From NCBI RefSeq assembly GCF_020745735.1, contig NC_083432.1, positions 32,016,533-32,080,532 on the forward strand: DNA of 64,000 nucleotides. The letters are read 5' to 3'. Source of the stretch: Hemiscyllium ocellatum. Its lineage: Eukaryota. Under the pieces are notes generated by a model. It was not told where the DNA came from, searched no databases, and saw only the letters and a program-made list of their open reading frames with translations. Both the position numbers and the translations under genes were made by a program. The stretch's first letter is position 1; each line of letters begins with the position of its first letter. This document shows positions 1 through 44,784 of the stretch, in pieces.

Positions 1-381
1 TTAGTTAGGGGGATATGGGTTTGGGTGGGTTACTCTTCAGAGGGTCGGTGTGGAGTTGTTGGGGGCTGTTACCACAGTGTACGGAATCTCATCTAATGTA
101 ATCATCTGATTTCACTCCCACAGCTATGTGGTTGACTCTCTACTGTCCCCTGAGCAACTGGGGATTAGCAATAAACGCTGACCTGATGAGTAATGCCTTC
201 ATCCTGTGAATGAATAAAATGGCTTTGAGAATATAGCATCACTATAATTAATTTTAAAACAATTTAGCATCGATATTGTATACATGCTGTGTCATGGTAT
301 TACTGCCTACATACAGATCCATTGCTTGCAGTTTCCATTAATTTTGCTCCTTAGAACATAACTACAGCTTTATGTTTTCAG

Positions 382-466
382 TGCTGGCACTTGTGTGTTG
401 AAATGACGTGACCACAAAGCTGGAGAATACAAACAGGGACACCGGATGCCTCAAGCAGGGAATTTG
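382..466 (+). other. Putative 5'UTR exon of FUT copy 1
   Basis: Flanked by tatgttttcag| and |gtaagt (consensus donor), about 800 bp upstream of the FUT coding-exon acceptor at 1274/1275. No transcript evidence is available. Confidence 0.5.
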
Positions 467-1330
467 GTAAGTGAAGGAATTTGGTGCAATGAAAGTAGAG
501 ATGCCACCTGATTATTTCCACATGAAATGTGGCCCAAGAGGAAGCAAGGGACATCGAGGTTCCAAGAGAGGGAATCACAGGCCGTAAGACCTGAAGGTTT
601 ACGTGTGGAGGCATTGGTTAGGAGTACAGTGTTTCAAGTTTGTCCCCAAATGAAACTGAATGCAGTAACTTAACCAAGCACTGAACAAATTTAACTTATT
701 ATAAATTTCAAGTGTAACTCATTAATTTTAAATTGTAACTGTGGGAAACTGAGAGATATTGTAAACTCCAAATTGATCAGTAACATTTTAAAATGGCAGG
801 GAACTGCAAGTTGATACTGCAAAGGCTGTGGGCCCTGGCAACATTCTGGCAATAGTACCAAAGATTTGTTCTGCCCTCCACTGGATTGCCCATATCTGTC
901 CTTCTGTACCTTGACCATTCAGCAAATAGAAGATAAAACCAATTCTCCTCCACAGGACTCCTTTTTTTTTACCAAATCAATCGATCTGAAACAGTAAAAA
1001 GCTGGAGAATACAACTCATGCCAGATGTCACATCTATCATTTAAGTGATTTGCCAAGTTTTCATGCACTGATTGTGCAACTACATTTTCATTCCCTATCT
1101 ATCCTGTCACTTCCTATCAATTTGCAGAAAGATGTTAAACCCTCAATTTTATCAATTATGCGTCATATTTATTTCTCAAAAGGAGCTTTGTTAAATAAAT
1201 AATCCGACAGCAATATTTGGAAACTTGTCCTTCATCATTGTTATTGTATTAATAAATGATTTCTTGATTTTCAGATACTCCACTTGAGGAAATCATAAAC
1301 TGCGACTCACAACGTGAAGAATCTCTGGAT

Positions 1331-2410
1331 ATGGCTCTTTTGAACAAACGTTGTGCTGATCCAGCCATGAAAGTGATAGCCTTTCTAACATTCTTTTATT
1401 TCATAATGACAGTTTCTGTAATGTATAAATATCATTTAAAATATCACGCAATGTTCAAATATGTCCAATCTTTGGAAAATACATCCATAATATTGGAAAG
1501 TGAAGCAGAGAAGAATTCTTCAAAGGTGGTGATTTCTTCAAAGGGATTTTGGACAATTAACTCCATTGGACGACTTGGCAACCAGATGGGGGAGTATGCA
1601 ACACTATATGCATTGGCAAAATTGAATGGTTATCAAGCATATATTTTGCCTTCCATGGCCAATTACCTGTCCCCTATCTTCAAAATTACCCTTCCAACCC
1701 TCCATGATAGTGTGAGAAAGAAAATACATTGGAAGAATTATAATCTTAATGACTGGATGGAGGATCGGTACTGTAGTATTCAAGGAAATTATGTCAGCCT
1801 CTCAGGATACACGTGTTCCTGGACATTCTATCATCATATCCGTTCAGAAATTCTTCGTGAGTTAACTATGCATGATTTTATTGTAGAAGAGGCTAATGCA
1901 TTCCTAAGACACATTAGAGGTGAGCGAAAGAATGTGACGTATGTTGGTGTTCATGTTCGAAGGGGAGATTATATACATGTCATGCCAAATATTTGGAAAG
2001 GAGTTATAGCTGATAAGAAATATTTAGACACAGCAATGGCCTACTTCAGAAATAAATACAAAAATGTGGTTTTTGCAGTGACAAGCAATGGAATGGACTG
2101 GTGTAAGCAAAACATTAATAACTCCAAAGGAGATGTTTACTTTTCAGATGATCCCAAGCAGGCTACTGTCGCTTTTGACTTTTCTATCCTTGCACATTGT
2201 AACCACACAATAATGACAATCGGGACATTTGGTTTCTGGGCTGGCTACTTGGCAGGTGGGGAGACAATTTACCTCACAAACTTTACTTTGCCTGAGTCAC
2301 CTTTCCTAAAGGTGTTTAAATATGAAGCAGCTTACTTACCTGAATGGATTGGGATTCCTGCTGATCTCTCACCTCTTCTGCATGAAAATGCTTCAGACTT
2401 AGTCCATTAG
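1331..2410 (+). CDS. FUT2: Galactoside alpha-(1,2)-fucosyltransferase, FUT1/FUT2-like (GT11), copy 1; single coding exon
   Basis: 359-aa ORF with an N-terminal type II membrane anchor ([18 protein letters not shown]). Family motifs [57 protein letters not shown] and C-terminal [22 protein letters not shown]. Splice acceptor ttttcag ends at 1274, upstream of the ATG, as in mono-exonic vertebrate FUT1/2. Orthology to FUT1 versus FUT2 cannot be resolved here. Confidence 0.95.
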
Positions 2411-3199
2411 CTGCATGTCCCAATATTCTTCGAAGCTTGTTGATTTCATGCCTCTTGAATTCAATCCATTTTCATTGATCAAGAAATTAAACTAAATACC
2501 TCAAACACATTGAGTTTCCAGAGAATAAGTTCGGAAATCAATATGTCCAAAAACATACATTGAAATTTTTAGAAAGTGTAGTTGTCTTTGCTTTGTCAAA
2601 GCCATTGCTAAATATATTTCAGTTAGTAACAGTTATGTTGCTGGAGTTCTTTAATGGGCAGCATTAACTGAGTTCACAATATATACATCACATCTAACTA
2701 GACAGTACAGCAGTGGAATTAACAATTAAAAACATCTGTACAGGAGGCTCTCTTCAAGAAACCTGTAAATATGGCTCTATGTGTTCCTTTATTTTTGTTT
2801 ATGAGTCTACAATTCCACAAGGCTGCCATTATCTCACTATCACTAATAGCAAGTTAATATATCCAGAGTCTAGGAACCTACATTCTTTAATATAGAAAGA
2901 ATATTTCAGATCATTGCATTTATCAGTACAGAAGCATATGACTGTTGGTGCTGGCAATCTGGAATAAAGAGAAAATGTTGCAGAACTTATTTCCCATATT
3001 TACAGCTTTTACAAGTCTGTCTTATACTGCTCTAATCTTCAGCATGCAGCAGGACTAGAGTAGGTCCTGACTCCACCTCAGCCAGGATGGGGATCAAGCC
3101 CTGTGCTATTGGCACCCACCTAATCCACACCAAGGCAGCCAAAAGCGTCATCACCCCCAAGGAGTCAGTATTGTTGTGGGAACATACACTTTTCCATAT

Positions 3200-3470
3200 T
3201 GGATGTAGGTTTGCTCGCTGAGCTGGAAGGTTCATTTCCAGACATGTCTTTGTTTGGCTTGTCTTAGGATGGATGTGTTGTCCCAGTCGAAGTGGTGTCC
3301 TTCCTCATCCATATGTGAGGATACTAGTGAGAAAGGGTCATGTCTTTTTGTGGCTAGTTGGTGTTCATGTATCCTGGTGGCTAGTTTTCTGCCTGCTTGT
3401 CCAATGTAGTGTTTGTTATAGTGCTTGCATGGTATTTTGTAAATGACATTAGTTTTGCTTGTTGTCTGTA
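3200..3470 (-). mobile_element. Penelope-like fragment (second family), GIY-YIG
   Basis: My antisense translation is TNVIYKIPCKHYNKHYIGQAGRKLATRIHEHQLATKRHD...HHFDWDNTSIL. Duplicated at 29962-30232. Confidence 0.82.
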
Positions 3471-3759
3471 TTATTTCCTTTCGCCGTTAAGTCCCAGTGT
3501 GGGACTTGTTCGAGGAAATAGCTAAACAGGAATCACTCCCAATTTTGCTGCCTCTTTTAGGGAATTAATGGAAAGAGTTACAGGTTCATACCCAACATTT
3601 CTGGCCACCTCATGAATACATTGCTGTTAACCTTCAAGTCCTTGGGTTGAACTTAAACCAGACCTTCTGCTGCAAGGCAGGAATACTACCTCCTGTTCAG
3701 CAAAACCTCCAATCATTTAAACTAATATACCCATTGATTGCTGGTCTACCGAACAGCAT

Positions 3760-4880
3760 TAGCCTGAATACCACAAAACCAGAAGTGTTTTAGTCATGCT
3801 ACAACGATACAAAGCCTTGGTTAGACCACAGATAGACACATGTCTGTCACAAGGTGGCACTACCTTTGTGTACAGTACATTAGCTTTAGAGGGAATGCAG
3901 ATTCGATTTGCTTGAACGCTATCTGGACACACAAGGAATGAATTACAAGGTGAGACTAAACAAACCATGGTCAGAAGGTTTTGAACTTAGAAATTAGAAG
4001 ATTAATAGATGATTTGATTGGAGCTCTCAAGATATTTGGGCTACTGATTAGCAAAGAAAATTTCTCCTGCTGGTTTAGGAATAAAGAACTAGGGCATACA
4101 GTCTAAATATTCAAGATTTGGAAGTGCCAGTGTTGGAGTAGAGTGGACAAAGTTAAAATCAGACAAAACATTTATTTGGAAGCATTAGGTTTTGAAGTGC
4201 TGTTTCTTCATCAGGTGATTGTTGAGCAGAATCATAAGACACAGATTTTATAGCAACAGGATTGCAGTGTCATGGAATGTGACATTAAACAAACTTAGAT
4301 TAAGTCTTTCATCTTTTAGAATGACCACGTTAGCTTCAGTTCCTTCATATGTAAATCACAGAGCTTTTTCAAAGTTACATTTTCTACATAGCCTTTAGCA
4401 ATAGGTGTCATCTCAGCTTAGATAGTGCATTGAAGATGTGAAGTTAAAGTCTGTCTGTTTCCCAAAGTTAGGTCAGGCTGGTTCTATTTCTAAAGTGGGA
4501 GTTACAGAAACTTATTTGGATTTATACAGCTTTTGAGCAAAATAAAATGTAATTCTGCAAGTACTTGTGAGACAAATCAAACCAAGGTCATTAGGTTTTG
4601 AACTTAGAAATTAAAAGATTAAAAAGTGATTTGATTGGAGCATTCAAGATGTAATGGGCTACTGATTAGCAAAGAAAATTATTTCTGTTAGTTTACGAAT
4701 CAGGAATTAGGGCATCCAGCCTAAGTCTTCAAAGTAGACCTTTCAGGAGTGACATCAGAAACAAACTTCTATGTGAAAGAACGGTACAGGTTTAGTACTC
4801 CCGTTTTCAGATGGTCATTCTGGTCTCATTGAAAGGTGGAGCAGACTTGAGAGGCTAAATGACCGACTATTTTCTATAAT
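3760..4880 (+). mobile_element. Old CR1-like LINE 3' remnant interrupted by a Penelope-like terminal fragment (about 4120-4565)
   Basis: tacaaagccttggttagaccaca...gatttgattggag...ggagcagacttgagaggctaaatgacc resembles the CR1 3' region. Duplicated at 30522-31642. Confidence 0.6.
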
Positions 4881-6810
4881 GAATCAAAAGGAACATAAAG
4901 CTTGGTCTGTTTCCATGAGCACTGCTATCTCACTAACTGCAATGAATATCGTGAATATTTTCAAAGGGAAATGCTAATCAAGAACATTGCTGTACTTTGA
5001 CAATGTTGGGTGTACATTGACTCATATATTTGCAATAGCATTGTGTGGAGAAACTGAGGTGATTCTGTGACTTGATGTTACAAGCAAAGTGCAACGCATA
5101 TTAAGTACATTGAGGAAATATCGCTGATAATTGTTTTGTCCATTTATTCTGAAGTGTCAGATTTAAATTGATCAATTGTACAGATGTTTTTAATATACTT
5201 AGAAAGTTCAAGCCTGACTGGACATACATTCCATTTTTGTCACAAATACTGACAACATTTCAAATAAAGCTCCCAACTCACATGGAAAATGTAAGACATT
5301 GATCTACAAATCCTGTGGTTTATGGTAACAGTTTTATCATAATTCGTGCTGTCAGAAATTGTTCACATTTACATTGTCAAACAAATGTTCAATCATTTGA
5401 TCTTTGTCACAATTGCTAACTGCTAATAATGTGTAAGTCTTTTTCTGTAAATGATTAAGGGTGTTATTTACATAATACTGCATGAGACGATCCAAGACGG
5501 AATAGAAAATTCCAACTTATTTATAATCAGTCTCTTAAAGTACTGATAATGCTTTCCAATCACTCATGCTTGGTAGAAATAGTTTCCTAAAAATAAATAA
5601 ATTTCTGAAAGTATGTTAAAGATTGATAATAATTTTATTCAGGTGTATAACCAGTACTGTACATGTGACACTGACATTGACGTGAATTGACTTGAGAAGA
5701 ATTCCTGTTGTATTCATAACAGTAATTGGACAGCAAATGAGCACAGTGACAGACTGCATTGTATTTTTGCTGAAAATAGGAACCTAAGGTTCAACATAAC
5801 AATCTCCTTGTGTCAGTCTATCTATGTCTCTCAAATGTTCCTACCAGAGCTGCTGGGAGATGAAAAAGGAAGCCCAGCTCGTCTTCCTCTAAGGCATCAG
5901 TGCTCGCTTCCTCAGAAGTGGAAAGCAGTTTGTCTTGAGCAGCTGCCCTGTTGAGAACAGAGGCTGTGAACTTGCTGCTTTTACCCACAGGAGACCAAAG
6001 AAAGAAACTGTTCACAACCAAGAAGTAGATGTTGTGGCAATGATAATCGTGCAATCCCAGTGGGGGAAATGGGAGAGTAACACAACAAGGAACAATGCTT
6101 CTTGATTGGTGCAAGAACATGGAGGTTTAGGTATCTCCACTGAAGGGATCTGAGACAGGGCCAATATCGTCTCCTCAGAGTGGATGAAGAGACATTGTGG
6201 GTACCTCTGGTAGGAGTGAGTGGGAGAATTGTGCTAGCAAAGAGTCATGTTATGGTGTTACTGAGGTAGGTTTGGGGCAATCATTGGTGAAACTCGCTCG
6301 ACCCCTCAGTGAGGAACCTTCTATGAAACTTGACAAAACTGACACTTAATCAATTTCTGGTAAGATTGAGCCCTGTATTCTGTAATGTTAAATGGTAATT
6401 ATTTCCAATAGTTATATGCTTCTCATGCAGTTTTACATATCTCCTGTTCAATCTGTTCAGACATATCGGTATATACCTCTGGATCGGTTGGGGGGAGGGG
6501 GGGCACTTGACCTGAAGCATTCATGGCTCAAAGACTAGGGGCACTGCCAATGCTCTACCACAAGAGTCCCACCCCCAATTCATTTTAATTTTCTTCTTTA
6601 TGTTTGCAAAAGATCTCTTACAAACAAATGACTGTTTTTGTTCCCCATGAACAAATCATCGCAGAAATTGTTCTCGTCGATTAACCACAACCAGTAAATC
6701 TACTGTATTTCCAATGGATTCATTTATTGGGCAAACTCATTGAGAGCAATGCAGGCCTCAAAACTGAAGCAGAGTTAGAGAGAGGGGAAAGGATCAAAAT
6801 CAAATGGAGT

Positions 6811-7090
6811 TATAGATTCCTCTACAGGGTGGAAGCAGGCCCTTCGGCCCAACAAGTCCACACCTACTCTCTGAAGAGTAGCCCACCTAGATCCATTTCC
6901 CTCTGACTAATGCACCTAACACATGGCCAATTCACCTGAGCTGCACATCTTTGGACTGTGGGTGGAAACCCACGCAGACACAGGGAAAATGTGCAGACAC
7001 CACACAGACAGTCAGCTGAGGCTGGAATCAAACCTGTGTCCCTGGTGCTGTGAGGCAGCAGTGCTAACCACTGAGCCACTGTGCTGCCCT
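6811..7090 (-). mobile_element. HE1-type SINE
   Basis: Antisense SINE consensus; duplicated at 33573-33852. Confidence 0.87.
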
Positions 7091-7094
7091 TATA

Positions 7095-7620
7095 GTGTCA
7101 TAGAGTTTTAGAGCACAGAAACAGACCCTTCAATCCAACTCAGCCAAGACGACCAAATTCCCCAAACTAAACTCGCCCCACTTACCTGCATTTGGCCCAC
7201 ATCCCTCTCAGCCTTTCCTTTTCATTTACCTGTCTAAATGTCTTTTACATGTTGTAATTGTACCTGCATATACCACTTTCTCTGCCAGTTCATTCCACAT
7301 ACGAACCACACTCTGTGTGAGGAAATTGCCCCTCATGTCCCTTTTAAATCTATCTCCTCTCACCTTAAAAATACGCCCTCTTGTTTTGAGCTTCTTCTGC
7401 CCCCCTCCCACCATGGGGAAAATACTTTTGCTATTCACCATATTCATGCCTTTCATGATCTTACAAACCTTTAATTGGTCACCCCTTAATCTCCTTCTCT
7501 CCAGTGAAAAATGTCCTGACCTACCCAACCTCTCTTTATAACTCAAACCCTGCTGTCCTGGCAAGATCTTGATAAATCTTTTCTGAACCTGCTACATTTT
7601 AATAAACTGCTTCCTATAAG
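7095..7620 (-). mobile_element. CR1-type LINE 3' fragment
   Basis: ORF 7226-7564 LSYKERL..FSLERRRLRGD..RMWNEL. Duplicated at 33857-34382. Confidence 0.85.
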
Positions 7621-8922
7621 ATGCTTTTATGGATAATTATACTAATTACAAATTCATTACTACTGATTATAATTTGACTTTTAATTTTATTTCAGAAACA
7701 GAAATTGCTGGAGATACTCCAAAAGTATGGCAGCATCTCTGGAGAGAAAACAGAGATCATGTTTTGAGTCTAGTGGTCCTTGTTCATTTCTAGACCAGGA
7801 GGAGAGCTGGGGCCAATCCCAAACTGCTCAAGAAGTATTCAATAGCATCGCTGAACAGAATTAATTAGAAAATAAATGCAAAGTGTCTCTGATCCCATTG
7901 GGAGTCAGCTGTTTTGGAGGGTTCTGTGAGAGTGTCCCTATCTCTGAACCAAAAGGCCAGGGCTCAAATCCCATCTGCTCCAGAAGAATATTCTAGCATT
8001 TTTGAATAAGTTGAATAGGAAATATAATTGCAGGCTTCTGGATAAGTTCCAACAAGGAACTGTCATATTGAATTGATGTTGCAATACAGCGATACCTAGT
8101 AATCATTATGTAAATGCACTCTAATAGCAACTGTAGGCAACGAAACACCTGACCAGTTTTAATTAAAAATGCCAGCATGTTGCAATCTATTAGGGATTAA
8201 CCATTCAGTGAAAATTAAACTAACCCTTCATCTCCGGGAGCAATCTAGTGAACCTCCTCCAGACTGCCTACAGTGCAACTATATCCCTCCTCAAGCAAAG
8301 GGACCAAACTTTATGCAATACTTGAGGTGCAGTCTCACTAATACCCTGTACAGTTACAGCAGCACCACCGTACTTCTTTACTTTATTCTTTGAGCAATGA
8401 ATACCAAAATTTTATTTGCCTTCATTAAACTAGACACTTATACAGCATGAGAAGAGAATAATGATTGGTTTGACTATGCTTGACATGAGGTGCAGCAGAA
8501 ACTATTGATTGCCTAAGTTTCCACATTGAACTCAAACCGTGTCAGATCAACTCTGATTGGTCAGAATATTACAGTGGGGTTGAAACAGCTATGAGCAGTT
8601 CCCATTGACCCATAAATCATAGAATAATGTGCAGAAATATATTCCATTTGCCGCTCAAGAAGAGGGACCTAGCTGTGAATTATATCATAGCTTCTGGCAT
8701 CTACAAATTAGTCACATTGCAAACTCAACTGCTCTCAAATTGATTTCCAGTACAATTCCTAACGCAGTCAGGATTATTTCACAAATGTTTTCCATTCCTG
8801 GTTGGACAATTTGGTCCAGATATTTCTAGCCAGACAGGTATTGGAAAAATATGTTGGGATCCTGCTGAATACCAGATACAGCAGACCCCACGAGAATTGT
8901 CTGGAAAATTCTCCTGCATCGT

Positions 8923-9243
8923 GAGTGGCACGGTGGCACAGTGGTTAGCACTGCTGTTGGACCCAGCGCCTGAGACCCGGGTTCAATTCCTGACTCAGGC
9001 GACTGACTGTGTGGAGTTTGCACGTTCTCCCCGTGTCTGCGTGGGTTTCCTCTGGGTGCTCCGGTATCCTCCCACAGTCCAAAGATGTGCGGGTCAGGTG
9101 AATTGGCCATGCTAAATTGCCCGTAGTGTTAGATAAGGGGTAAATGTAGGGGTATGGGTGGGTTGCGCTTCGGCGGGTGGGTGTGGACTTGTTGGGCCGA
9201 AGGGCCTGTTTCCACACTGTAAGTAATCTAATCTAATCTAATC
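8923..9243 (+). mobile_element. HE1-type tRNA-derived SINE, full length
   Basis: A box tggcacagtgg, B box gggttcaattcc, V-SINE core tgtggagtttgcacgttctccccgtgtctgcgtggg, (taatc)n tail. Confidence 0.9.
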
Positions 9244-9404
9244 ATCTGGAAGACTCAACAAAACCCTTAACATTGGAGAATTTGGAGGAGCCTGTTTCCT
9301 TTAAGTTAATAGTAAACCAGGACAAGTTGAGAAATTCAAAGATTGCACAAAATTCCCAGCTATTAGACTGACCTCCATCCAAGGTACCACAAACCATCCA
9401 CAGC

Positions 9405-9965
9405 CACCTCATCTCACCACCCCCACACACACACTTCATCTCCCCAGCCTTCTTACAACACTACAACCCCTGACAAACAACCTCCCCAAATGCCAGCCAG
9501 ATGCTTCCCAATGCAACACAATTCCAAACCCATCCTGAGACCTGAGAACATCACTTCACTGACCCTGACACTACCACACTGCTGCCCACACACACACACT
9601 CTGTATCCACCAGCCATAAAACATAACACATGTTCCCCAGCCCCCACATTTAACAGATGCACAGCATCCCCAACATCCCATCTACACCACATCTCCACTG
9701 ATTCCAACTTCCCCATTCCATCACTGGAACTATGAATTCTCCCCACTCCAGAGCCAACAGTCCCAATCCCTCCACATTCCCAAACCTATTGTAAGCTCTA
9801 CCTCACCCATATTCACTCAGCACCCTATCCACTTGGCATCTTTCACCCTACCCATCTGGCAACTTAATTCTCTGGTATCCTACCTACCTGGTACATTAAC
9901 ACCCTACCTACCTGGCATCTCAATCCCTTAACCAACTGTCAACCCAACTCAGCATTTGCCTTCCA
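9405..9965. repeat. C/A-rich, G-poor low-complexity tract (duplicated at about 36167-36727)
   Basis: Recurrent cctacc/ctggca/cacac units. Confidence 0.6.
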
Positions 9966-11158
9966 TATCTATCCTATCACAAAAGTTGTCAAAGTGTCTG
10001 GCTGTGTTTGACCAGAGCACACTGACAGCTGCAAAAGGGCTGATGGCTTGACCTTCCCTGACTATCCAGCATTACTGGGGATCTGTGTGATTTCAACTAG
10101 TCTCCACATTTCTAAAGAAGCCAGGATCTGAACTTGAGACTAGAAATGAGGGCTTCAGTGTGAACATTAAACAAAAGAATAGAAGGACAATCTGACTATG
10201 ATTGGGCTGGTGAGCACAGTTAGTATGTTGGCTGCTGCAGATGGGTGTTTGATACAGTCTGCCACACATTGGGATGTATTGCCTATATTCCTAGCAGCAC
10301 AATGGCAATAATATACATCGACCACATTACTCATCTGGTAGGTAGAATGTTTTTAATTCATGCTCAAACAATGGAAAACTGCAAGGAAGCGAGTGGAACA
10401 TACGAGAACACTTGGGAAGTTATAAGCAAAACATTCAACCTCCAATTTTTTCACGTCTTCATTAACTAAAATCACTTCCTCCCCCAAACAGCCAAAGCCT
10501 CTGTTCAAGTGTAGAATTCTGCAAAAATACAGATGAGTTGCCAATACAAGAGATAGCAACATCTTCCATTATTATTGCATGAATCCCCTTGCTACGAGGC
10601 AGTACTTGATCACTGCCATGGATGAGAGTATTGGAATGAGTGAAGTATGTCTCTGCTTGATGTTTCAGCTTGTCCCCTAAAAAGCATTGGTTGAGTTCAG
10701 AACCTGGGTAACTTGAGCTGTGTTTCTTCCTGTCCCATTGATGGTACTGCCATTAACCAGCCATGATCAAACTATCCCTGAGCCACTTACAACAATGCAA
10801 CAGAATAGCTTGGAAACAATCACACTGAAAACGGATGGGAAATTAAACTCACTTCATCTGAGGAACAAATTCCTCATATTTACTGTAACTCTGTCATAAT
10901 TAGTCCATTTACCCGCTCAAACAGATCATCTTCATTTTAAATAATTGCAGGGAAATCATCATTAGCTGTTCATAAGAAGTTGGTAAGATAAAGGAAAATA
11001 ACAAAGCCTTTGTCCCCTCCAATCTGGGATTCATCTTGTAATACAGTTATGACTGAACTGCTATCTTAATTCTACCTCTTATACTATCTCCATAACCCTC
11101 TATTAACATAGTGCCCAAAAATCTATCGACCTCGGTCTTGAATATCTCCAACAACTGA

Positions 11159-12304
11159 GTTAAAAATCACACAACACCAGGTTATAGTCCAACAGGTTTA
11201 ATTGGAATCACATTAGCTTTCGGAGTGACGCTCCTTCATCTGGTGGTAGTGGAGGGCTCACTCTTAACACAGAATTTATAGCAAAAATTTGCAGTGTGAT
11301 GTAACTGAAATTATACATTGAAAAATTGATTGTCTGTTAAGCCTTTCATCTGTTAGAATGCAGTGATAGTTTCACTTCTTTCATGTGTAAATCACAAAAC
11401 CTTTTTTTCCAAAATTTGTATTCTCAGTTAAGCTGTTAACAATGGTGATAGCTAGACAATATGTTGAAGGTATTGGCCCCTTGTGTTTTCTGTCTATGCC
11501 GTGATGTTTAGAGTGATTCTAATTCTGAGATAACTGAGTTTTACATAAATTCATGCAGTTTTTGAGCTCAGAGTTCTACATGAATGCATGCAGTTTTTGA
11601 ACAAAGTACAATGTAACCCTGCAAGTACAAATTCACCCCACAAAATATATGTGTGCATGTTGGTCTTTGTCTGTGTGTGTGTCTGTCTGGGTTGGGGGTT
11701 GTGAGTGTGAGAAAGTGTATGTGTGTGTGTGTAGTGAGTGCAGAGTGAGTGTGGGAGTGTGTGTGTCGGTAAAGGTTGTGTAAGTGTCCGTGTGAACGTC
11801 TGTGTATGTGTGTATAGGAGTGCCTGTCCATTTGTGGGTGTGTGAGAAAGAGTGTGTAGGAGTATCTGTGTGTGTGTGTGTATAGTGCAATGGTGGTCAC
11901 CTGTAGTATGACATGAACCCAAGGCCCCGGTTGAGGCCCTCCCTATGGGTACCGAACTTGGCTATCAGCCTCTGCTCGGCCACTTTTCTCTGCTGCCTGT
12001 CCCGACGTCCACCTTGGAGGATGGTCACCCAAATATCCGAGGCTGAATGTCCTGGACCAATGAAATGTTCCCCAACTGGGAGGGAATCCTCCTGTCTGTT
12101 GATTGTTGTGCGGTGCCCATTCATCCGTTGCCGTAGCCTTTGCTCGGTTTCCCCAATGTACCATGCCTCTGGGCACCCTTGTCTGCAACGTATAAGATAG
12201 ACAACGTTGGCAGAGTCACATGAGTACCTGCCATGTACAAGGTGGGAGGTGTCCCCACACGTAATGGTAATATCTATGTCCACACTCTGACACGTCTTGC
12301 AGCA
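11159..12304 (-). mobile_element. Penelope-like element fragment with GIY-YIG endonuclease
   Basis: ORF 11897-12283 NVVYLIRC..C...YIGET..LRQRMNGH..E..LI......GLN. 12-bp TSD tccaacaactga (11147-11158 / 12305-12316). Empty site in the paralog near 37935. Confidence 0.9.
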
Positions 12305-12782
12305 TCCAACAACTGAAGAGCACAGTTGCTGCTATACCGAATTTCCAGGATTCACAATCCTTTGAGTGAAGAAATTTCTCCTCTTCTCAGTCCTAAACAG
12401 CCGACCTCTTTCCCTGAGCCACTATGTTTTGTTGATCCTGGTTCATGTTGAACTAAGAGGATGATTCTCTAATCCAATGTAGTAGTGGGAAGCAGAACAC
12501 ATGGAGCACATTGACAATGTACATTCTGTTTCTATGAATTAGTTCAACATTTTAATGTTAAAATTGATTTATCATAGCTCTTTGAATAGATTTAAAAATA
12601 GAAGCATGATCACCAAGCATTTTAGTTTTGCAATAAATAGTGGCAGATTATTTGATGCAATAAAATAATGACACAATAATAAACCCACCCAATGCACAAA
12701 CAAGTAAAAGGAAAATCCTGGATATTGAGCAATAGTTGCTGCCATAAATTTTTTTCTTAGAATTAACATATTCAAAATTCAC

Positions 12783-13003
12783 GAGGAGAAAATGAGGACT
12801 GCAGATGCTGGAGATCACAGCTGAAAATATGTTGCTGGAAAAGCGCAGCAGGTCAGGCAGCATCCAAAGAGCAGGAGAATGGACGTTTCAGGCATGAGCC
12901 CTTCTTCAGGAATCCTGAAGAAGGGCTCATGGCTGAAACGTCGATTCTCCTGCACTTTGGATGCTGCCTGACTGCTGCGCTTTTCCAGCAACACATTTTC
13001 AGC
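12783..13003. mobile_element. Fold-back element built from inverted Penelope terminal repeats
   Basis: Arms 12820-12911 / 12913-13003. 16-bp TSD catattcaaaattcac (12767-12782 / 13004-13019). Confidence 0.88.
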
Positions 13004-13159
13004 CATATTCAAAATTCACCCAATTTCAGACTACACCCTGCCCTTACTTTCATCAGGTGTAGTCTAATAATGCTATGTCTGTCACAATTGAAGAAATGAT
13101 TGTTCAATAATGCTAATGTGTTGTCTTTCTGATTATATAATTAAACAATTAAACACTGT

Positions 13160-13500
13160 GGGGTGACAGTGGCTCAGTGGTTAGCACTGCAGCTTCACAG
13201 CACCAGAGACCCGGGTTCGATTCCAGTCTTGGGCAGCTGTCTTTGTGGAGTCTATACATTCTCCCCATATCTTTGTGGATTTTCCCTGAGTGCTCCAGTT
13301 TCTTCTCACAATCCAAAGATGTGCAGGTTAGGTGAATTGGCCGTGCTAAATTGCCCATTGTGTACAGGGATGTTTAAGGTCAGGTTCATTAGTCAGGGGT
13401 AAATATAGGGTAAAGGAATGGGTCTGGAAAGGTTACTCTTTGGAGGGTTAGTGTGGGCTTGTTAGGTTGAAGAGCCTGTTTTCCACACTGTAGGGAGTCC
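13160..13500 (+). mobile_element. HE1-type SINE, specific to copy 1
   Basis: gtggctcagtggttagcactgc...gggttcgattcc. Empty site near 38535. Confidence 0.88.
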
Positions 13501-13504
13501 ATGT

Positions 13505-14602
13505 TTAATTACAATGCTATTAGGCAGGAACTGTGCAGCATAAGCTGTAAACAGATATTCTCAAGGAAATGCACGACAGAGATGTGGAGGTTATTGAGGG
13601 AACACTTGCTGCAAATGCTGGATAGGTTTGTCCCACTGAGGCAAGGAGGAGATGGTAGAGTGAAGGAACCTTGGGTGACAAGAGACGTGGAATATCTAGT
13701 CAAGAGGAAGAAGGAAGTTTACTTAAGGTTGATGAAGCAAGGATCAGACAGGGCTCTAGAGATTTACCATGTGGCCAGGAAGGAACTGAAGAATGGACTG
13801 AGGAGAAGTAGAAGACAGCATGAAAAAGCCTTGGCTGGTAGGATTAGAGAAAACCTCAAGGCATTCAAAACTTATGTGAGGAACAAATGGATGCCCAGAG
13901 TAAGGTTAGGTCTAATCAAAGATACTGGAGGGAACTTGTGCATGGAGTGGGAGGATGTAGGGAAGGTCCTTAGTGAATACTTTGCTTCAGTATTCTTTCG
14001 TGAGAGGGATCATGCCCTTAATGAGGACAGTGTGAAACAGACTGAAATGCTCAAACAGGTTGATCTTAAGAAGAAGAATGAGCTGGAAATGTTGAAAATC
14101 TTCAGGATAGAGAAATGGGATATATCCAGGTTATTATGGGAAGTGAGGGAAGATATTGTTGCGCATTTGGTGATGATCTTTGCATCCTCACTCTCCACTG
14201 GATTTGTACCAGATGATCGGAGGAAGGCAAATGTTGTTCCTTTGCTCAAGAAAAGGAATAGGGCTAACCCTGGGAATCACTGTCTCACACCAGTTTTGGG
14301 CAAATTATTAAAGAGGATGCTGAGAGACAAGATTTATGATTATTTGAAAAACATAGTTTGATTAGACATTCTCAACAGGTCTTTATGAGGGGCAGGTCAT
14401 TCCTCAGAAGCCTTATTGAATTTTTTGAAGATATGATAAACATATTGATGAAGGTAGAGCAGTGGATGTGGTGTATGTGGATTTTAGCAAAGCGTTTGAT
14501 AAGATTCCCATTTGGTAGGCTCATTCAGAAACTAAGGGCGCATGAGAGAAAGGGAAATCTAGCTGTCTGGATACAGAATTGGCTTGTTCATAGAAGACAG
14601 AC
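13505..14602 (+). mobile_element. CR1-type LINE fragment (ORF2), 3' part deleted
   Basis: ORFs 13501-14361 and 14358-14693 have CR1 ORF2 motifs (KEPWVT, EYFASVF, ANVVPLLKK). Same insertion as 38545-40660. Confidence 0.88.
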
Positions 14603-15175
14603 GTTGGAAAATATTCCACACATGTCCTCTACTTATCTGTTACTCTCAATGTGGTCTCCTCTACATTGTGGAGACAGGATGTCAACTTGCTGAATATTTC
14701 AGAGAACATCTTGAGGACACATGCACTAAACAACTCCACCGTCCTGTGGCCAAACACTTTAACTCCCCTTCCCACTCCACCAAGGACATGTATGTCCTGA
14801 TCCTCCTCCACTGCAAATACTAGCCACCTGACACCTGGAGGAAGAATGCCTCATCTTCTGCCTTGGGACCCTCCAACTACACGGAATCATTGTGGATTTC
14901 ACCAGTTTCCCCATTGATCCTCCCCCCAACTTATCTCGGATCCAACATTCCAACTCAGCGCGCCCTCTTGAACTGTCCTACCTTCCCACCTCTCCCCTTC
15001 ACCCTCCTCTCCGACCCTATCACCTTCACCCGAACCTTCAAATACCTATCACATTCCCAGCCGCCTTTCCCCTCAGCCCCGACCCCCTCCCATTTATCCC
15101 TCAGCATCCTTCGGTCACCCCGTCATTCCTGATGACAAGCCTATGCTCGAAATGTTGACACTCCTGCTCCTTAGA
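14603..15175 (+). mobile_element. Penelope-like element fragment (GIY-YIG remnant + terminal repeat)
   Basis: CSQCGLLYIVET...FREH...PVAKHFNSPSHS; ends in cctgatga...gaaatgttgac. Confidence 0.85.
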
Positions 15176-15355
15176 TATTATAGCCTTTGGCAGGGAAGGA
15201 ATGATATTAAAGTGATTTAAAAAGATGTCTTTGTTTAAATATTAATTTGCAGATTGTAAAAACAGTGCGTGAGATTCTGATTTCGCTCTCTGTCCTTATC
15301 TCCATCCATTTGGCACTTCCTTATTGCTTTGCTGTCAATATTTGATTTCATCAGC

Positions 15356-15513
15356 ATGTTGCTCTTTCTATTTGTCATCGTTCTTTTTACTTCAAGTTAT
15401 TTCAGTCGATTTCTTTCTCACTGCAAGTGCAAATCCTTTCGATGGTGATGTCAGAAAATCCCCATAACCTTTGGTTGTGGAATGAGCTGCCAGGAACAAA
15501 ATCCTTAAGCAAG
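15356..15513 (+). pseudogene. Disabled duplicate of RETSAT-like exon 1
   Basis: Aligns to 41477-41633. It has a +1 frameshift in the first ~35 nt, and the ancestral frame carries CAA>TAA (15465-15467) and AGA>TGA (15483-15485). Donor AAG|GTACGT is intact. No duplicate of exon 2 follows. Confidence 0.9.
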
Positions 15514-16117
15514 GTACGTCATTTAACTTTGATTAGTATCTTCCATATCCACAAGAGCATGTAGGTTTGTGACACAGAATACAGAGCCTGAACAATAATA
15601 ATTTTGAGTTGCAATTGTGGCAGAACTAAGACATTTTAGTCGTTAAAAACTTCAAGTAATGATGCTTGGCTGGTTTGGCTGGTTCAATTGCTCATCAATA
15701 ACTTTGCCAGATTTGAATGAGAAATATATGGAATACAAAGCTGTCTGTAGCACACTAACAAGCATGGACGGAACTTAACTACTTTTAATTCTCATCGACA
15801 AATATGATGCAAAATGTGTGAAGTGGTCATTACATTTTTGTTTCAGCTGTCTTTATGCTTCAGTTGTGGCATGCATTGCCTGCTGTAGAATTGAGTCTAA
15901 CTCCCTTTAAAACCAGGAAGTCCAGGGTTTGGGATTGAGATTGAGATTGAGACCTCAGGCCAAATATATTCATGGAATGTGAGCATCTTTGGTGAGGCCA
16001 ACATGTATTACTCATCTCTAATTGCCCAGAGGGCAGTGAAGAGACAATAACTTTGGGTGGATCGTGAGTCACATGCAAGCCAGACCAATTCAGGACCACC
16101 TTTCCTTCCCTCAAGGA

Positions 16118-16962
16118 GCTGAAAATGTGTTGCTGAGAAAGCGCAGCAGGTCAGACAGCATCCAAGGAGCAGGGGAATCGACGTTTCGGGGCATGAGCCC
16201 TTCTTCAGGAATGAGGAGTGTGTGCCGAGCAGGCTAAGATCAAAGGTAGGGAGGAAGGACTTGGGGGAGGGGGATTGGAAGTGCGATAGGTGGCAGGAGG
16301 TTAAGGTGAGGGTGATAGGCCGGAGTGGCGGTGGGGGCGGAGAGGTCAGGAAGAAGATTGCAGTTTAGGAAGGTGCTGCTGAGTACGAGGTTGGGACTGA
16401 GACAAGGTGGGGGGAGGGGAAATGAGGAAACCGGAGAAATCTTGTGGTTGGAGGGTTCCTAGGCGGAAGATGAGGCGCTCTTCCTCCAGCCGTCGTGTTG
16501 CTATGGTCTGGCGATGGAGGAGTCCAAGGACCTGCATGTCCTTGGTGGAGTACGAGGGGGAGTTGAAGTGTTGAGCCACGGGGTGGTGGGTTGGTTGGTT
16601 GGGTGTCCCAGAGGTGTTCTCTGAAACGTTCCGCAAGTAAGCGACCTGTCTCCACAATATAGAGGAGGCCACATTGGGTGCAGCAGATGCAGTACATGAT
16701 GTGTGTAGAGGTGCAGGTGAATTTGTGGCGGATACAGAAGGATCCCTTGGGGCTTTGGAGGGAAGTGTTGGGGAGGTGTGGGCGCAAGTTTTGCATTTCT
16801 CGCTGTTGCATGGAAGGTGCCAGGAGTGGAGATTGGGTTGGTGGGGGGTGTGGACCTGACACGGGAGTCACGGACAGAGTGGTCTTTCTGGAACACTGAT
16901 AGTTGAGGGTAGGGAAATATATCCTTGGTGGTGGGGTCTGTTTGGAGGTGGTGGAAATGACG
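16118..16962 (-). mobile_element. Penelope-like element fragment (GIY-YIG remnant + terminal repeat)
   Basis: MYCICCTQCGLLYIVETGRLLAERFREH and RRLEEERLIFRLGTLQP. Terminal repeat at 16118-16210. Confidence 0.88.
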
Positions 16963-17069
16963 ACAATCAGTACCTACAACAAATCCGAAGCGTCCAATCA
17001 CAGACCTCCCTCCGTATCCTCCACTCCACGCTTGCAGCCATGCATTCCCTGCACTCCCTACCTACATTC

Positions 17070-20000
17070 CATAAACCTATGCCCTCTAGTTCTGCAGTCT
17101 CCGATCCCAGGGAAAAGACTTTGTCGATTTACCCTATCCATGCCGCTCATAATTTTGTAAACCTCGATAAGGTCACCCCTCAGCCTCCGACACTCCAGGG
17201 AAAACAGCCCCAGCCTGTTCAGCCTCTCCCTGTAGCTCAAATCCTCCAACCCTGGCAACATCCTTGTAAATCTTTTCTGAACCCTTTCAAGTTTCACAAC
17301 ATCTTTCCAAGAGGGAGGAGACAGAATTGCATGCAATATTCCAACAGTGGCCTAGCCAATGTCCTGTACAGCCACAACATAACCTCCCATCTCCTGTACT
17401 CAATACTCTGACCAATATAGGAAAGCATATCAAACGCCTTCTTCACTGTCCTACCTACCTGCGACTCCACTTTCAAGGAGATATGAACCTGCACTCCAAG
17501 GTCTCTTTGTTCAGCAACACTCCCGAGGACCTTACAAATCCTGCTAAGATTTGCTTTCCCAAAATGCAGCATCTGCAATCTTACTAACTGTACCTCTTAT
17601 GCTCGCATTCAAATCATTTACGTAAATGACAAAAAGTAGAGGATCCAGCACCAATCCTTGTGGCACACCACTGGTCACAGGCCTCCAGTCTGAAAAACAA
17701 CACTCCACCACCACCCTCTGTCTTCTACCTTTGAGCCAGTTCTGTATCCAAATGGCTCGTTCTCCCTTTATTCTATGAGATCTAACTTTGCTAATCAGTC
17801 TCCCATGGGGAACCTTGTCAAACGCCTTACTGAAGTCCATATAGATCACATCTACTGCTCTGCTTTCATCAATCTCCTTTGATACTTGTTCAAAAAACTC
17901 AATCAAGTTTGTGAGACATGATTTCCCAAGCACAAAGCCATGTTGATTATCCCTAATCAGTCCTTGCCTTTCCAAATACATGTACATCCTGACCCTTAGG
18001 ATTCCCTCCAACAACTTGCCCACCACTGTGGTCAGGCTCACCGATCTATAGTTCCTTGGCTTGTCTTTAGCGCACTTCTTAAACAGTGGCACTACATTTT
18101 CCAACCTTCAGCCTTTCTGCACCTCAGCTGTGACTATTGATAATACAAATATCTCAGCAAGAGGCCCAGCAATCACTTCTCTAGCTTCCCACAGAGCTTT
18201 CAGGTTCACCTGATCAGGTCCTGGGGATTTATCCTCCTTTAACCATTTGAAGACATCCAGCACTTCCTCCTCTGTAATCTGGACATTTTGCAAGACCTCA
18301 CCAGCTATTTCCCTACAGTCTATATCTTCCATATCCTTTTCCACAGTAAATACTGATGCAAAATATTCATTGAGTATCTCCCCCATTTTCTGTGGCTCCA
18401 CACAAAGGCCGCCTTGCTGATCTTTGAGGGGCCCTATTCTCTCCCTAGTTACACTTTTGTCCTTAATATATTTGTAAACACCCTTTGGATTCTACTTAAT
18501 TCTATTTGCCAAAGCTATCTCATGTCCCCTTTTTGCCCTCCTGATTTCCCTCTTAATTATACTCCTACTTCCTTTGTACTCTTCTAAGGTTTCACTCGAT
18601 CTATCCTGTCTATACCTGACATATGCTTCCTTCTTTTTCTTAACCAAACCCTCAATGTCTTTAGTCATCCAGCATTCCCTATACCTACCAACCTTCCCTT
18701 TCACCCTGACAGGAATATACTTCCTCTGGATTCTTGTTATCTCATTTCTGAAGGCTTCCCATTTTCCAGCCGTCCCTTTACTTGCGAACATCTGTCTCCA
18801 ATGAGCTTTTGAACGTTCTTGCCTAATACCATCAAAATTGGCCTTTTTCCAATTTAGAACTTTAACTTTTAGATCTAGTCTATCCTTTTCCATTACGATT
18901 TTAAAACGAATAGAATTATGGTCACTGGCCCCAAAGTGCTCCCCCACTGACACCTCAGTCACCTGCCCTGCCTTATTTCCCAAGAGTAGGTCAGGTTTTG
19001 CATCTTCTCTAGTAGGTACATCCACATACTGAATCAGAAAATTGTCTTGTACACACTTAAGAAATTCCTCTCCATCTAAACCTTTAACACTGGCAGTCCC
19101 AGTCGATGTTTGGAAAATTAAAATGCCTGACCATAATTATCCTATTATTCTTACAGATTGCTGAGATCTCCTTACAAGTTTGTTTCTCAATTTCCCTCTG
19201 ACTATTGGGGAGTCTATAATACAATCCCAATAAGGTGATCATCCCTTTCTTATTTCTCAGTTCCACCCAAATAACATCCCTGGAGGTATTTCCAGGAATA
19301 TCCTCCATCAGCACAGCTGTAATGCTATCCCTTATCAAAAATGCCACTCCGCCTCCTCTCTTGCCTCCCTTTCTATCCTTCCTGCAGCATTTGTATGCTG
19401 GAACATTAAGCTGCCAATCCTGCCCATCCCTGAGCCATGTTTCTGTAATTGCTATGATATCCCAGTCCCATGTTCCTAAACATGCCCTGAGTTCATCTGC
19501 CTTCCCTGTTAGGCCCCTTGCATTGAAATAAATGCAGTTTAATTTATTAGTTCTACCTTGGTCCTGACTGCCCTGACTGTTCGATTCACTTCTGTTCTCA
19601 ACTGTACTAGTCTCAGATTGATCTCTTTCCTTACTATCTCCCTGGGTCCCACACCCACCCCACCTTCCACCTTACTAGTTTAAATCCTCTCAAGAAGTTC
19701 TAGCAAATTTCCCTGCCAGTATATTAGTTCCCTTCCAATTTAGGTGCAATCCATCCTTCTTGTACAGGTCACTTCTACCCCAAAAGAGATTCCAATGATC
19801 CGAAAATGTGAATCCTTCTCCCATACACCAGCTCCTCAGCCATGCATTCAGCTGCTCTATCCTCCTATTCCTGATCTCACTAGCTTGTAGCACTGGGAGT
19901 AATCCAGATATTACTACCCTTGAGGACCTCCTTTTTTAATTTCTGCCTAACTCTCTGTGATCTCCCTTCAGAATCTCAACATTTTCCCTTCCTATATTGT

Positions 20001-21215
20001 TGGTTCCAATGTGGACAATGACCTCTTGCTGGCACCTCTCCCCCGTGAGAACATTCTGCACCCTCTCTGAGACACCCTTAATCCTGGCACCAGGGAAGCA
20101 ACACACCATTCTGCTTTTTCGCTGCTGGCCACAGAAATGTCTGTCTGTACCTTGGACTACAGAATCTCCTAACACAATTGATCTATTGGAAACTGACGAA
20201 CCCCTCATTGCATTAGAGCCAGTCTCAATACCAGAAACTTGGCTGTTCATGCTATGTTCCCCTGAGAATCCATCACCCCCTACATTTTCCAAACCAGCAT
20301 ACCTGTTTGAAATGGATATATCCACAAAAGACTCCTGCCCTAGGTGCCGACCTCTCTTACCCTTCCTGGAGTTAACCCATCTATATGACAGTATCTGAGA
20401 CTTTCCCCCCTTCCTATAACTGCCATCCATCACATTCCGTTGCTGTTGCAAATTCCTCATTGCTTCTATCTGTCTCTCCAACCGATCCACTCGATCTGAT
20501 AAGATTTGCATCCAACAGCATTTACGGCAGATATAATCCGTAGTAACCCTTAAACTCTCTTTAAAATCTCACATCTGACAAGAAATACATATCACTGCAA
20601 AGGCCATTTTTGCTCCTTCGCAATCTACAGACCGAGAAAATAACACCGTCCTATTCCTCTACAAAACACTGTCTACAAATATAAGCTACGGCTTATATTT
20701 TAAGTTTAATCAAGAGACTTATCTCCAAAAATATATAATCAAGAAAGAACCCACTGTACTCACTAATACAGCCTTTCTCTTGGACAGACTTAAAACAACA
20801 ATTAACTTATCTGATTCTGTATTGTGAACTTCGCCCAAAGTGGTTCCTCTAATATTAGTTGTGAATTTCACTGTTTGTTAATTTTCCTAGATGCACTCCG
20901 ATGTCCAGCGATACATGAATTCAAAAACAGCAAAGGCAGAAACTGTGCAGGTATTTTCTTTCTCTCTCTCTCTCTCTCTCCCTCTTGCACTGTCCTCACC
21001 AAGTGCTTCCTTTGTCTGCTCTTCTCCCTTTTAAAATGCTGTTGTTATGATTTTTTTTTCCAAAGTTCCAAAACAATGCAACAGCATATAAAACAGTAAT
21101 TGCTGCTCCTGGAATTTGAGGAAATCACCTCCAGCTCCTAAAATACCTCAAAAAAAGAAGCAGCTCTCACAGCCAGAAATTTTTCCCGTCTTCCATTTTG
21201 GATTACCCAGAATCC
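17070..21215 (-). mobile_element. CR1/HER1-type LINE, 5'-complete, degenerate
   Basis: ORF1 has a CxxC..CxxC finger (about 20510-20600) and an SGNH esterase (LGDSVV, FPGARI, VHIGTNN; 19936-20511). APE endonuclease fragments at 19084-19347 and 18492-19025. RT at 17544-18104 (YMDFSKAFDKVPHGRL, GVPQG). ORF2 C-terminus at 17058-17336. Absent from the paralogous copy. Confidence 0.92.
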
Positions 21216-22149
21216 TTGTCATCTGAAGCTAGACAAAGAGGTTCATTTAATGAAGAATTAAGAGGATTAGTAATGATGTGCAAGATCTCCATAATCTTTT
21301 TTCCATTATAGCCAAGTATAGCGTGCTACAATCTCTCACTCTAATTCTCCTACTTGACAAGCTCCAAAAATAACTGGAGGATGGCCTGAAGGGTCAGAAC
21401 CTCAGCAATGGCACACCATCCAGAGGGATTGATAAATCCAATCCAGGTTGTAGCTGTTTATTTTAATCTGTTTGCCAAAATATGGCCTGGGGGTCTGTAC
21501 CAAGAAGAAATTATTTTTTACTGTGGGCAGGAGGAATGTGACATCCTGACTTTGCATATCCAATCTTGCAGAAACTCACATGGTCTGCTGTGGGCTGTGT
21601 TTACTTTTCTGTGTTTCCACTGCAGCATTACCCCTGCCTCTCTCTTTCCAGTTACAATTCTATAAACTCAAGTCAGACGCATTTCCAACGTGAAGTTACT
21701 CTGTGGATTGAAAAGATCCTATTTGTTCTTGCACGGACCAACAGTACATTTGCTGAGTGCTCCTTTCTGCCTTACCTCTGTAACTTCTGTCACAGTTTTC
21801 TTACGGTGACACAGATTCCTACTGTTCCTAACTGTGTACTCTGCCTTGAGCCTTTTCCCTGCACTTTCTTCAACTTCTATGCTGATTTAGCCATTCTGCA
21901 GGTCAGTGCCTAGGTCTCCCTCCAAGTTTATTGATAGACACGCCCTGTCACTACTGAGCTTACCCATCTCTGGGATGGGTACATGGTTTATTGCCTCCAT
22001 ATTTCAATTGGGACTTTTACTCTAGTTCTGTGGGTCCAATTATCATTGCCACTGTGTAGCAATCTGAGAGCTACATTCCTGTGAGTGAACAGCAGCAGAC
22101 TATATTGAACATAACTCAATACAGACCAAGCATCCAATTCCTTGAAGTC

Positions 22150-22482
22150 ACTGTGTGGCATAGCTCAAAATCACCATCAAGTCTGCACTCACTCTTCAAA
22201 GAGCTTCCCACCCAGACCCAAGCCCCTACCCCCATAACCCCACATTTACTATGGCTAACCCACCTAGTTAAACATCCCTGGACACCAAGTGGCAAATTCG
22301 CCTGACAATCTATCTACCCTGAACACCTTTGGGCTGCGAGAAGCAACCAAAGGAGGAAATCCCATACAGACACAGGGAGAACGTTGTAAATTCCACCCAG
22401 GCATTCACCCAAGGTTGGAATCAAATCCAGGTCCCTGGTGCTATGAGGCGGCAGTGATAACCACTGAGCCACCATGTCACCC
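22150..22482 (-). mobile_element. Old HE1-type SINE shared with 44112-44456
   Basis: Same position in both old paralogs, so it predates the duplication. Confidence 0.8.
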
Positions 22483-23244
22483 TGGAAACTAGGTACAGGT
22501 TCTCGATACAATTCAGAACTTTTAAAACGGTTTTCCTGCCTACAGTTAACACCATTTTGCAATTTTGAAATCAGGCAACGGCTAATCTTTATTGTCAAAT
22601 TTTGGAACTTGACCTGGAGTAACATTCAATACTGCACTCTCTCACCTCAGATAGGAAATCCATTATAACAAATGCACAATTAAAATTATGTTTCCTGTTC
22701 CAGTCCATTTTAACTATGGGATCATTCTGATTTATGTTAAGAGTTTCATATGTCATTTATAAATTATTGAATTAAAAAAGAAACTATGTCCCAATTTTTT
22801 TCCCTGTATTTCTTGAATGCTTCCTATTGCTGGATAGCTTCATGCCCAGAGATATGTATTTCTACTTTGGATTGAAAGAGGTGGAGAAATGCTCTCAATC
22901 ATGTTCCTCAATTCAAAGATTCTAAGACCCTTTAATTGGATCCTGTGGCCAATTGAAATTATGGCTGAGTGAAACGGTTACAGAACTAGAAATTCATCGG
23001 CCTGAACCAATGTTTGAGTCTTGAGTTAAATTGTTTAAACTCCATGTTTTTTAGAATTGTAGAGATTCATTTTCTTTATAATTCTCTAATCTTTAACAAA
23101 AGAACGACTTTCTGCTAGTAGGCCTTTGCTCCATGCTAACTTTGCTCAATGTGTTTCTCTTTCCTACTTTGATTTCACACTTGCTCAGCTTTTTATTTTG
23201 GTGATTACAAACTGGAAATCTGAAACAAACACGGAGTTTGCTGG

Positions 23245-40660: not shown

Positions 40661-40844
40661 CGATTCAGTTCCCATTCCTGGTCACCCTGCAGCCAAGTCT
40701 CCATAATCCAAATTATATCGTACCACTTTACATCTATCTGCAGAATTATTTCATCCACTATATTGCAAATGCTCTGAACATTTCTTCAATGCACTTTTCC
40801 TCTACAATATATAGATCCCTAAATGTGGTTAACCATTGGTTGAT

Positions 40845-41166
40845 TTGGTGGCCAGTAAAGTTACCTCATAGTGCCAGAGACCCGGGCTTGATTCTAGCCT
40901 CGGGCAAAAGTCTGTATGGAGTTTGCACTTTCTCCACTGTCTAATTGGGTTTCCTCCAGGTATTCTGGTTTCCTCGCAATCCAAAGATATGTAGGTTACA
41001 TGAATTGGCCGTGCTAAACTGCCCATACTGTTTCGGGATGTGTAGTTAGTTGCATTAGTCGGGGTAGATATAGGTTAGGATAATGGGTCTGGGTGGGTTA
41101 CTCTTCAGAGGGTCTGTGTGGACTTGTTGGGCCAAATGGCCTGTTTCCACACTGTCGGAACTTCTG
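40845..41166 (+). mobile_element. HE1-type SINE
   Basis: Diverged SINE core about 300 bp upstream of the RETSAT-like ATG. Confidence 0.82.
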
Positions 41167-41476
41167 AATAAAGAAGTGGCAGCATTGAGACCTTGTTTAT
41201 TAGAATTGTTGATGATAATGTTATTGATTTTGTCAACAAAACACTAGTTGTTTTCAAGTCATGCTTTGATGTTATAGCCTTTGGCAGGGAAGGAATGACA
41301 TTAAAATGATCTAAAAAGATTTCTTTATTTTAAATTTTATTTACAGATTGCAAAAAATGTGCATGAGATTCTGCTTTCACTCTATGTCCTTATCTCGCTT
41401 CAGCTGGCCCTTGCTCATTATGTATGTTTGACTTTGACTCCTTGCTGTTTTGCTGTCAACATTTAGTTCAATCAGC

Positions 41477-41633
41477 ATGTTGCTGTTTCTGTTTCTCGTG
41501 TTTCTTTTACTTCTAGTTATTTCAGTCTATTTGTTTCTCACTACAAGTGCAAATCCTTTCGCTGTTGATGTCAGAAAACCCCCTCAACCTTTGGTAGTGG
41601 ACAGAGCTGCCAGGAACAAAATCCTTAAGCAAG
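41477..41633 (+). CDS. RETSAT: All-trans-retinol 13,14-reductase (retinol saturase)-like, coding exon 1
   Basis: MLLFLFLVFLLLLVISVYLFLTTSANPFAVDVRKPPQPLVVDRAARNKILKQ(G): hydrophobic signal/anchor plus the NPF..DV..PP.PLV.D..AR.K.LKQ motif of RETSAT. Donor AAG|GTACGT, phase 1. Confidence 0.9.
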
Positions 41634-44456: not shown

Positions 44457-44473
44457 AGAAACTAAGTACCAGG

Positions 44474-44610: not shown

Positions 44611-44784
44611 CAGGTTCTAGGTACAACCTAGGACTTTTAAAACTGACTTCCTGCCCACCGTTAAAATAATTAACACTACTTTGCAATTTTGAAATCAGAC
44701 AAAGGTTAATGTTTATCTTTAGATTTTGGAATTTGACCTGCAGTAAAATTCACATACTGTACTCTCTCATCTCAAGTAGTAACA

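Follow-up and report, generated by a model that had tools for sequence, protein, structure and literature searches.

The window, a stretch of 64,000 nucleotides from contig NC_083432.1 of Hemiscyllium ocellatum, the epaulette shark, contains two units of an old tandem array lying upstream of RETSAT. Each unit carries a GT11 alpha-1,2-fucosyltransferase gene (FUT) and a dead RETSAT 5' piece. The repeat period is 26762 bases, with positions 1-11151 aligning to 26763-37938 by self-BLAST. The upstream unit is referred to below as unit A or copy 1 and the downstream unit as unit B or copy 2. The features are as follows.

1 to 9762, plus strand: copy 1, most recently homogenised domain, 0.2% from 26763-36524, left end outside the window
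1331 to 2410, plus strand: FUT copy 1, intact single-exon ORF of 359 aa, GT11 alpha-1,2-fucosyltransferase
8920 to 9242, no strand assigned: SINE occupying the corresponding site of both shark copies (twin 35682-36004), site empty in Chiloscyllium punctatum
9763 to 10296, plus strand: transition zone of 1.1% divergence (twin 36525-37054), opening with a cluster of four differences at 9763-9779
10297 to 10362, plus strand: hyperdivergent patch of 66 bp at the edge, 16 events including a 13-bp indel (about 24%)
10297 to 12768, plus strand: third divergence level, 6.3-7.3% from 37055-38396
11152 to 12303: copy-1-specific insertion flanked by target-site duplications, interrupting the third divergence level
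12769 to 13016, no strand assigned: copy-1-specific insertion bearing a 15-bp target-site duplication and coinciding exactly with the rise from about 7% to 13-18%
13017 to 23093, plus strand: oldest divergence level, unit A, 13-18% from 38397-45646
22678 to 23093: dead RETSAT 5' piece closing unit A
23093/23094, no strand assigned: old tandem duplication junction, end of homology to 45646, at 1300/1301 of the C. punctatum locus L001
23094 to 26762, plus strand: spacer between units, orthologous to L001 1301-4769, with a reverse-transcriptase fragment inside
26763 to 36524, plus strand: copy 2, partner of the homogenised domain
28093 to 29172, plus strand: FUT copy 2, intact ORF of 359 aa, A281T and Y335F relative to copy 1
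49225 to 49419, plus strand: exon of a downstream FAD-dependent oxidoreductase gene (called RETSAT), with a GSGIGG dinucleotide-binding motif

FUT matches PF01531 (Glyco_transf_11) with E=2e-104 and 349 bits, against a curated cut-off of 23.9, and contains the motif HVRRGDY; the reading frames of both copies are intact. Their two differences, A281T and Y335F, are both non-synonymous, and for both the derived state is in copy 2. The proteins of the two genes are H. ocellatum proteins of assembly GCA_020745735.1, from a 52.2-Mb chromosome. Exon 49225-49419 received the generic FAD-oxidoreductase label in the Protein Atlas and fits, at the level of that domain, the gene that the earlier note had named RETSAT. 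Unit A (26.76 kb) exceeds unit B (22.55 kb) in length, and most of the gap is made up of copy-1-specific LINE material at about 16.1-21.2 kb (window 16100-21200), with reverse-transcriptase ORFs on the minus strand.

The divergence between the two copies rises in steps. From 1 to 9762, against 26763-36524, the MAFFT difference list contains 20 single-base differences (0.2%). The following 534 bp, 9763-10296, contain seven events (1.1%), namely the differences at 9763, 9768, 9778 and 9779, a 4-bp indel at 9995-9998, and differences at 10217 and 10262. Dense differences begin at 10297, with 63 events up to 11151, equivalent to 6.3% by substitutions and to about 90% identity with gaps counted. 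Collinear blocks differ by 6.3-7.3% up to 12768 and by 13-18% from 13017 to the homology end at 23093/45646. Change-point likelihood places the main step at 10216-10296, and the fit also singles out the 66-bp patch at 10297-10362. The near-identity followed by an abrupt switch, described in the earlier note, was thus recovered by self-BLAST and MAFFT with coordinates right to within 1-3 bases, but the 85-90% identity given there for the sequence beyond the switch needs correction, since it is about 93% by substitutions just past the switch and falls to 82-87% only beyond 13017.

There are two steps at the switch, at 9763 and at 10297. The zone between them has an excess of events over the 0.2% rate (Poisson P=1.4e-4) and a strong deficit relative to the 7% rate (P=3e-10); its distinction from the 0.2% domain is weakly significant (P=0.025) when the 9763-9779 cluster is counted as one event. 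A 23-24 bp minisatellite lies within this transition zone at window 9821-9925, and the C. punctatum sequence is longer there than either shark copy by 48 bp, or two units.

Differences within 1-9762 are themselves clustered (P=0.0005; 0.02 once adjacent ones are merged). At 3134-3136 (29896-29898 in copy 2) the ancestral CGG, as found in Chiloscyllium, has become GGC in copy 1 and CGT in copy 2, so that site 3136 has three states, in copy 1, copy 2 and the ancestor, inside a block of 99.8% identity. Copy 1 carries the allele of Stegostoma at 9763 and 9778, and copy 2 and C. punctatum share another. For the inner clusters at 3045-3136 and 7392-7482, none of six copy-1 alleles matches the deeper outgroups. 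Their interpretation as remnants of the original unit A was dropped on this ground; they may be mutation clusters instead, and are not counted as proof of conversion.

The order of events was fixed with a 21-kb locus of C. punctatum (L001), the ortholog of window copy 2, as outgroup. Upstream of its FUT, L001 contains the end of unit A, the same junction (1300/1301, corresponding to window 23093/23094) and the spacer. The old tandem duplication with a junction near 23093, proposed in the earlier note, is thus shared between genera and predates the split of Hemiscyllium and Chiloscyllium. In a three-way alignment of copy 1 (A), copy 2 (B) and C. punctatum (C), dAB is 0.002 left of 9763, against 0.057 for dAC as well as dBC. 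To the right of 10297, dBC (0.052) is smaller than dAB (0.075), with 70 changes unique to A, 27 to B and 40 to C, and over 10297-12768 copy 2 groups with C. punctatum, leaving copy 1 as outgroup. Where the oldest level begins, 23, 5 and 4 changes are unique to A, B and C, respectively. The paralogues thus group by species despite a duplication older than the split, as indicated by the distances and in agreement with the protein tree. These distances, together with the SINE common to both shark copies and missing in C. punctatum, show that the FUT-bearing region of about 10 kb was homogenised after the species split, in line with the non-allelic recombination that the earlier note had invoked.

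Two simpler causes of the near-identity were discarded. Conservation is excluded, since the same 9.3 kb differs by 5.7% from its ortholog, and a young duplication is ruled out by the outgroup junction, the distances and the SINE.

The four divergence levels (0.2%, 1.1%, about 7% and 13-18%) imply no fewer than three nested events of homogenisation, each of which took in FUT. The event behind the 7% level predates the species split, because copy 1 is the outgroup there, and the two youngest events postdate it. The 10297 step adjoins the hyperdivergent patch, and the insertion at 12769-13016 falls where divergence rises from about 7% to 13-18%; for this reason 10297 probably marks the limit of an earlier event, about 1% ago. 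We infer that the latest exchange occurred between 9208 and 9763, i.e. between the last difference of the 0.2% level (9207) and the beginning of the transition zone. The recent homogenisation in the earlier note is retained, whereas its single event is replaced by a nested series, and the crossover point is moved leftward from the 10297 edge. The flagged spot is best explained as the point where a domain that recombination among the array's units keeps homogeneous comes to an end on its right side.

A further FUT gene was also found. On the H. ocellatum chromosome of the window there are exactly three FUT2-like proteins with more than 99% identity, each at one place, in a 90% protein cluster. 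Two are the window's own, and the third, XP_060704582.1, differs from copy 1 by three residues (Y101H, C148H and E187K) and is sister to the window pair in the protein tree. At the level of annotation, this near-identical protein bears out the additional copy predicted in the earlier note. Its distance of 3-5 residues corresponds to about 0.8-1.1% at the nucleotide level when scaled by the between-genus dN of 0.024, and this distance of about 1% matches the 1.1% zone at 9763-10296.

Arrays of this type occur in other carpet sharks. Stegostoma tigrinum has at least three tandem FUT units, each with a dead RETSAT piece, in the loci L004 and L002, which lie 4.7 kb apart; the unit periods are 24.06 and 24.47 kb. 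These units are mosaics with 0-11% divergence per 500 bp, of which the FUT block is the most alike (98.7%), and units 1 and 2 share 500 bp of identical FUT coding sequence. FUT copies cluster by species throughout the tree. Together with the Stegostoma units, this clustering indicates that both the array and its concerted evolution are ancient and widespread among carpet sharks. Annotated FUTs of this kind number one per Chiloscyllium annotation, versus three in H. ocellatum. Since one FUT is annotated in Chiloscyllium and Stegostoma has at least three units, copy number changes at the locus.

The nature of the latest event is open to more than one explanation. We lean slightly towards a copy-gain unequal crossover forming a hybrid unit, which is a tentative choice, over gene conversion. 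According to the crossover model, the left parts of units A and B would have been homogenised earlier, about 1% ago, up to 10297, ending against the hyperdivergent patch with its 13-bp indel. A later unequal crossover between misaligned units, with an exchange point between 9208 and 9763, would have made a hybrid unit, window copy 1, in which the left part stems from the downstream unit and the right part from the upstream one. The array would have been raised to three units in this way, and the third, upstream unit would carry the XP_060704582.1 gene. The left parts of the copy-1 unit and its downstream neighbour match almost perfectly in register, and the sharp, in-register switch obtained by self-BLAST, MAFFT and change-point analysis is a point for this model. 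The crossover model accounts together for the third copy, its distance of about 1% and the 1.1% zone, and agreement between the last two is what a hybrid unit would require.

Copy-neutral interlocus gene conversion, as one long tract or many patchy ones, is nevertheless a serious contender. Conversion would have overwritten the original left part of unit A (copy 1) repeatedly with sequence of the downstream unit, or vice versa; local heterology would have halted the tracts that end at 9763, 10297 and 12768, and the third FUT would belong to an older third unit homogenised likewise. The nested edges adjoin the patch with the indel (10297-10362) and the copy-1-specific insertion (12769-13016), which is typical of the ends of conversion tracts. 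The differences within the 0.2% domain fall into clusters and are in part of mixed polarity, the three-state site 3136 fits patchy conversion at least as well as copy gain, and the copy-1 alleles at 9763 and 9778, being those of Stegostoma, form an island of older sequence; the Stegostoma units, including their stretch of identical FUT coding sequence, display a similar mosaic. Long conversion events are on record for human duplications (PMC10172114), as is conversion between FUT2 and Sec1 for mammals (PMC4398370). In segmental duplications the mean length of conversion is 6.26 kb, and that of whole-gene events is 26 kb (PMC10172114). With such tract lengths, the heterologous edges, the clustering, site 3136 and the alleles at 9763 and 9778, copy-neutral conversion explains the window equally well. 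However, it requires an extra ancestral unit for the third FUT and makes the match between the distance of the third copy, about 1%, and the 1.1% zone a coincidence, and the inner clusters, if they are mutation clusters rather than old remnants, contribute nothing to it.

An assembly or polishing artefact, by which truly different left parts (e.g. by about 1%) were made alike or a haplotype was falsely duplicated, is very improbable. The assembly was produced with TrioCanu on PacBio CLR reads and polished with arrow and linked reads (PMC10587355), and the distance of 0.2% between the copies equals the nucleotide diversity of the species (pi = 0.002), both of which leave some room for an artefact. 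Against this, the window has no gaps (no runs of N), the block keeps the register of an ancient duplication that has the same junction in another genus, and each copy runs on to the right into diverged sequence of its own, so that the copies are neither allelic throughout nor flanked by gaps, two hallmarks of false duplication. The library average of 54 kb exceeds the identical stretch in the window, and purge_dups was applied to the assembly (PMC10587355). In addition, for the copy-1-specific stretch 7362-7512, all 12 sampled words were present in sequencing runs of four samples from two studies.

Both readings of the latest event have counterparts among known loci. Hybrid units formed by unequal crossover are known from tandem arrays such as the alpha-globin anti-3.7 triplication, RCCX/CYP21 and the red-green opsin array. 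The shark locus resembles them in its tandem units of tens of kb, in copy number that differs among relatives, and in a unit whose left side is almost the same as that of its downstream neighbour and whose right side abruptly takes on another ancestry. It differs in being known from the left-hand match alone and in showing two switch steps instead of one. The gamma-globin genes HBG1/HBG2 form the classical converted block. Like that block, the shark locus has a stretch in which paralogues resemble each other more closely than orthologues do and which ends sharply at local heterology, and the same likeness and the same kind of edge are found in converted segmental duplications (Vollger et al., 2023; PMC10172114), in whose reported range the shark tract of at least 9.8 kb falls. 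Unlike both of these, the shark tract is seen by its right edge only, and there are at least three copies. Gene conversion has also been described among the mammalian alpha-1,2-fucosyltransferase genes FUT2, SEC1 and FUT1 (PMC4398370), which share with the shark genes the GT11 family, the tandem arrangement and the clustering of paralogues by species. Mammalian tracts lie within the coding region of old paralogues, whereas in the shark a mostly non-coding block of 10 kb with the whole gene was homogenised and all copies are intact. In the library of papers searched, none on FUT arrays in sharks was found.

The behaviour of this gene family is of a known kind, real and ordinary. The locus is valuable as a clean and datable case of concerted evolution in a slowly evolving vertebrate, with four nested levels and an outgroup that fixes the order of events, and it places a host-glycan gene at the core of an ancient tandem array. 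In mammals, FUT2-type genes mediate host-microbe interactions. The skin mucus of sharks was reported to be heavily fucosylated (PMC10532229). Between genera, FUT has a dN/dS of 0.63-0.69 (dS 0.039, dN 0.024; window 1331-2410 against L001:10001-11080), and the protein evolves fast. Because the distance between copies equals the nucleotide diversity, the latest event could still be polymorphic. A wider proposal, that the 26.8-kb FUT unit still segregates as a copy-number variant and that intact FUT copies are repeatedly gained and homogenised across carpet sharks under selection acting on mucosal alpha-1,2-fucosylated glycans, is based on this equality (0.17-0.2% against 0.002), on a dN/dS of about 0.65 and on the retention of three intact copies; it is speculative and rather unlikely. 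If the number of units varies among individuals, the locus would offer a possible natural dosage polymorphism for fucosylated glycans. For annotation the locus carries a warning, namely that the orthology of its FUT copies is not assignable from the coding sequence.

Further FUT-like sequences were observed in the related species. In C. punctatum, a degenerate piece of FUT interrupted by many stops lies at L001:17161-17659, about 7 kb downstream from the intact FUT, and is nearest (62% aa) to the Stegostoma/Rhincodon type. The fragment has no counterpart in either H. ocellatum copy, and its flanks join at window 8214-8221. The Rhincodon locus ends in a second, diverged FUT-like frame (L003:20886-21080; aa 24-86, 55%), about 10.9 kb downstream of the Rhincodon FUT.

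Within the Stegostoma array, units 2 and 3 (L004:41993-42218 and L002:17744-17969) do not have a segment of about 5.8 kb present at L004:15769-21604, which contains the homologue of window 9653-12749. This suggests that units 2 and 3 descend from a single unit in which the deletion had already occurred. The dead RETSAT piece preceding Stegostoma unit 3 (L002:1635-2768) continues into intron-1-like sequence corresponding to window 45734-46179. This extension passes beyond the junction found in the hemiscylliids, and the 23093 junction may be secondary, not the original breakpoint of the duplication.
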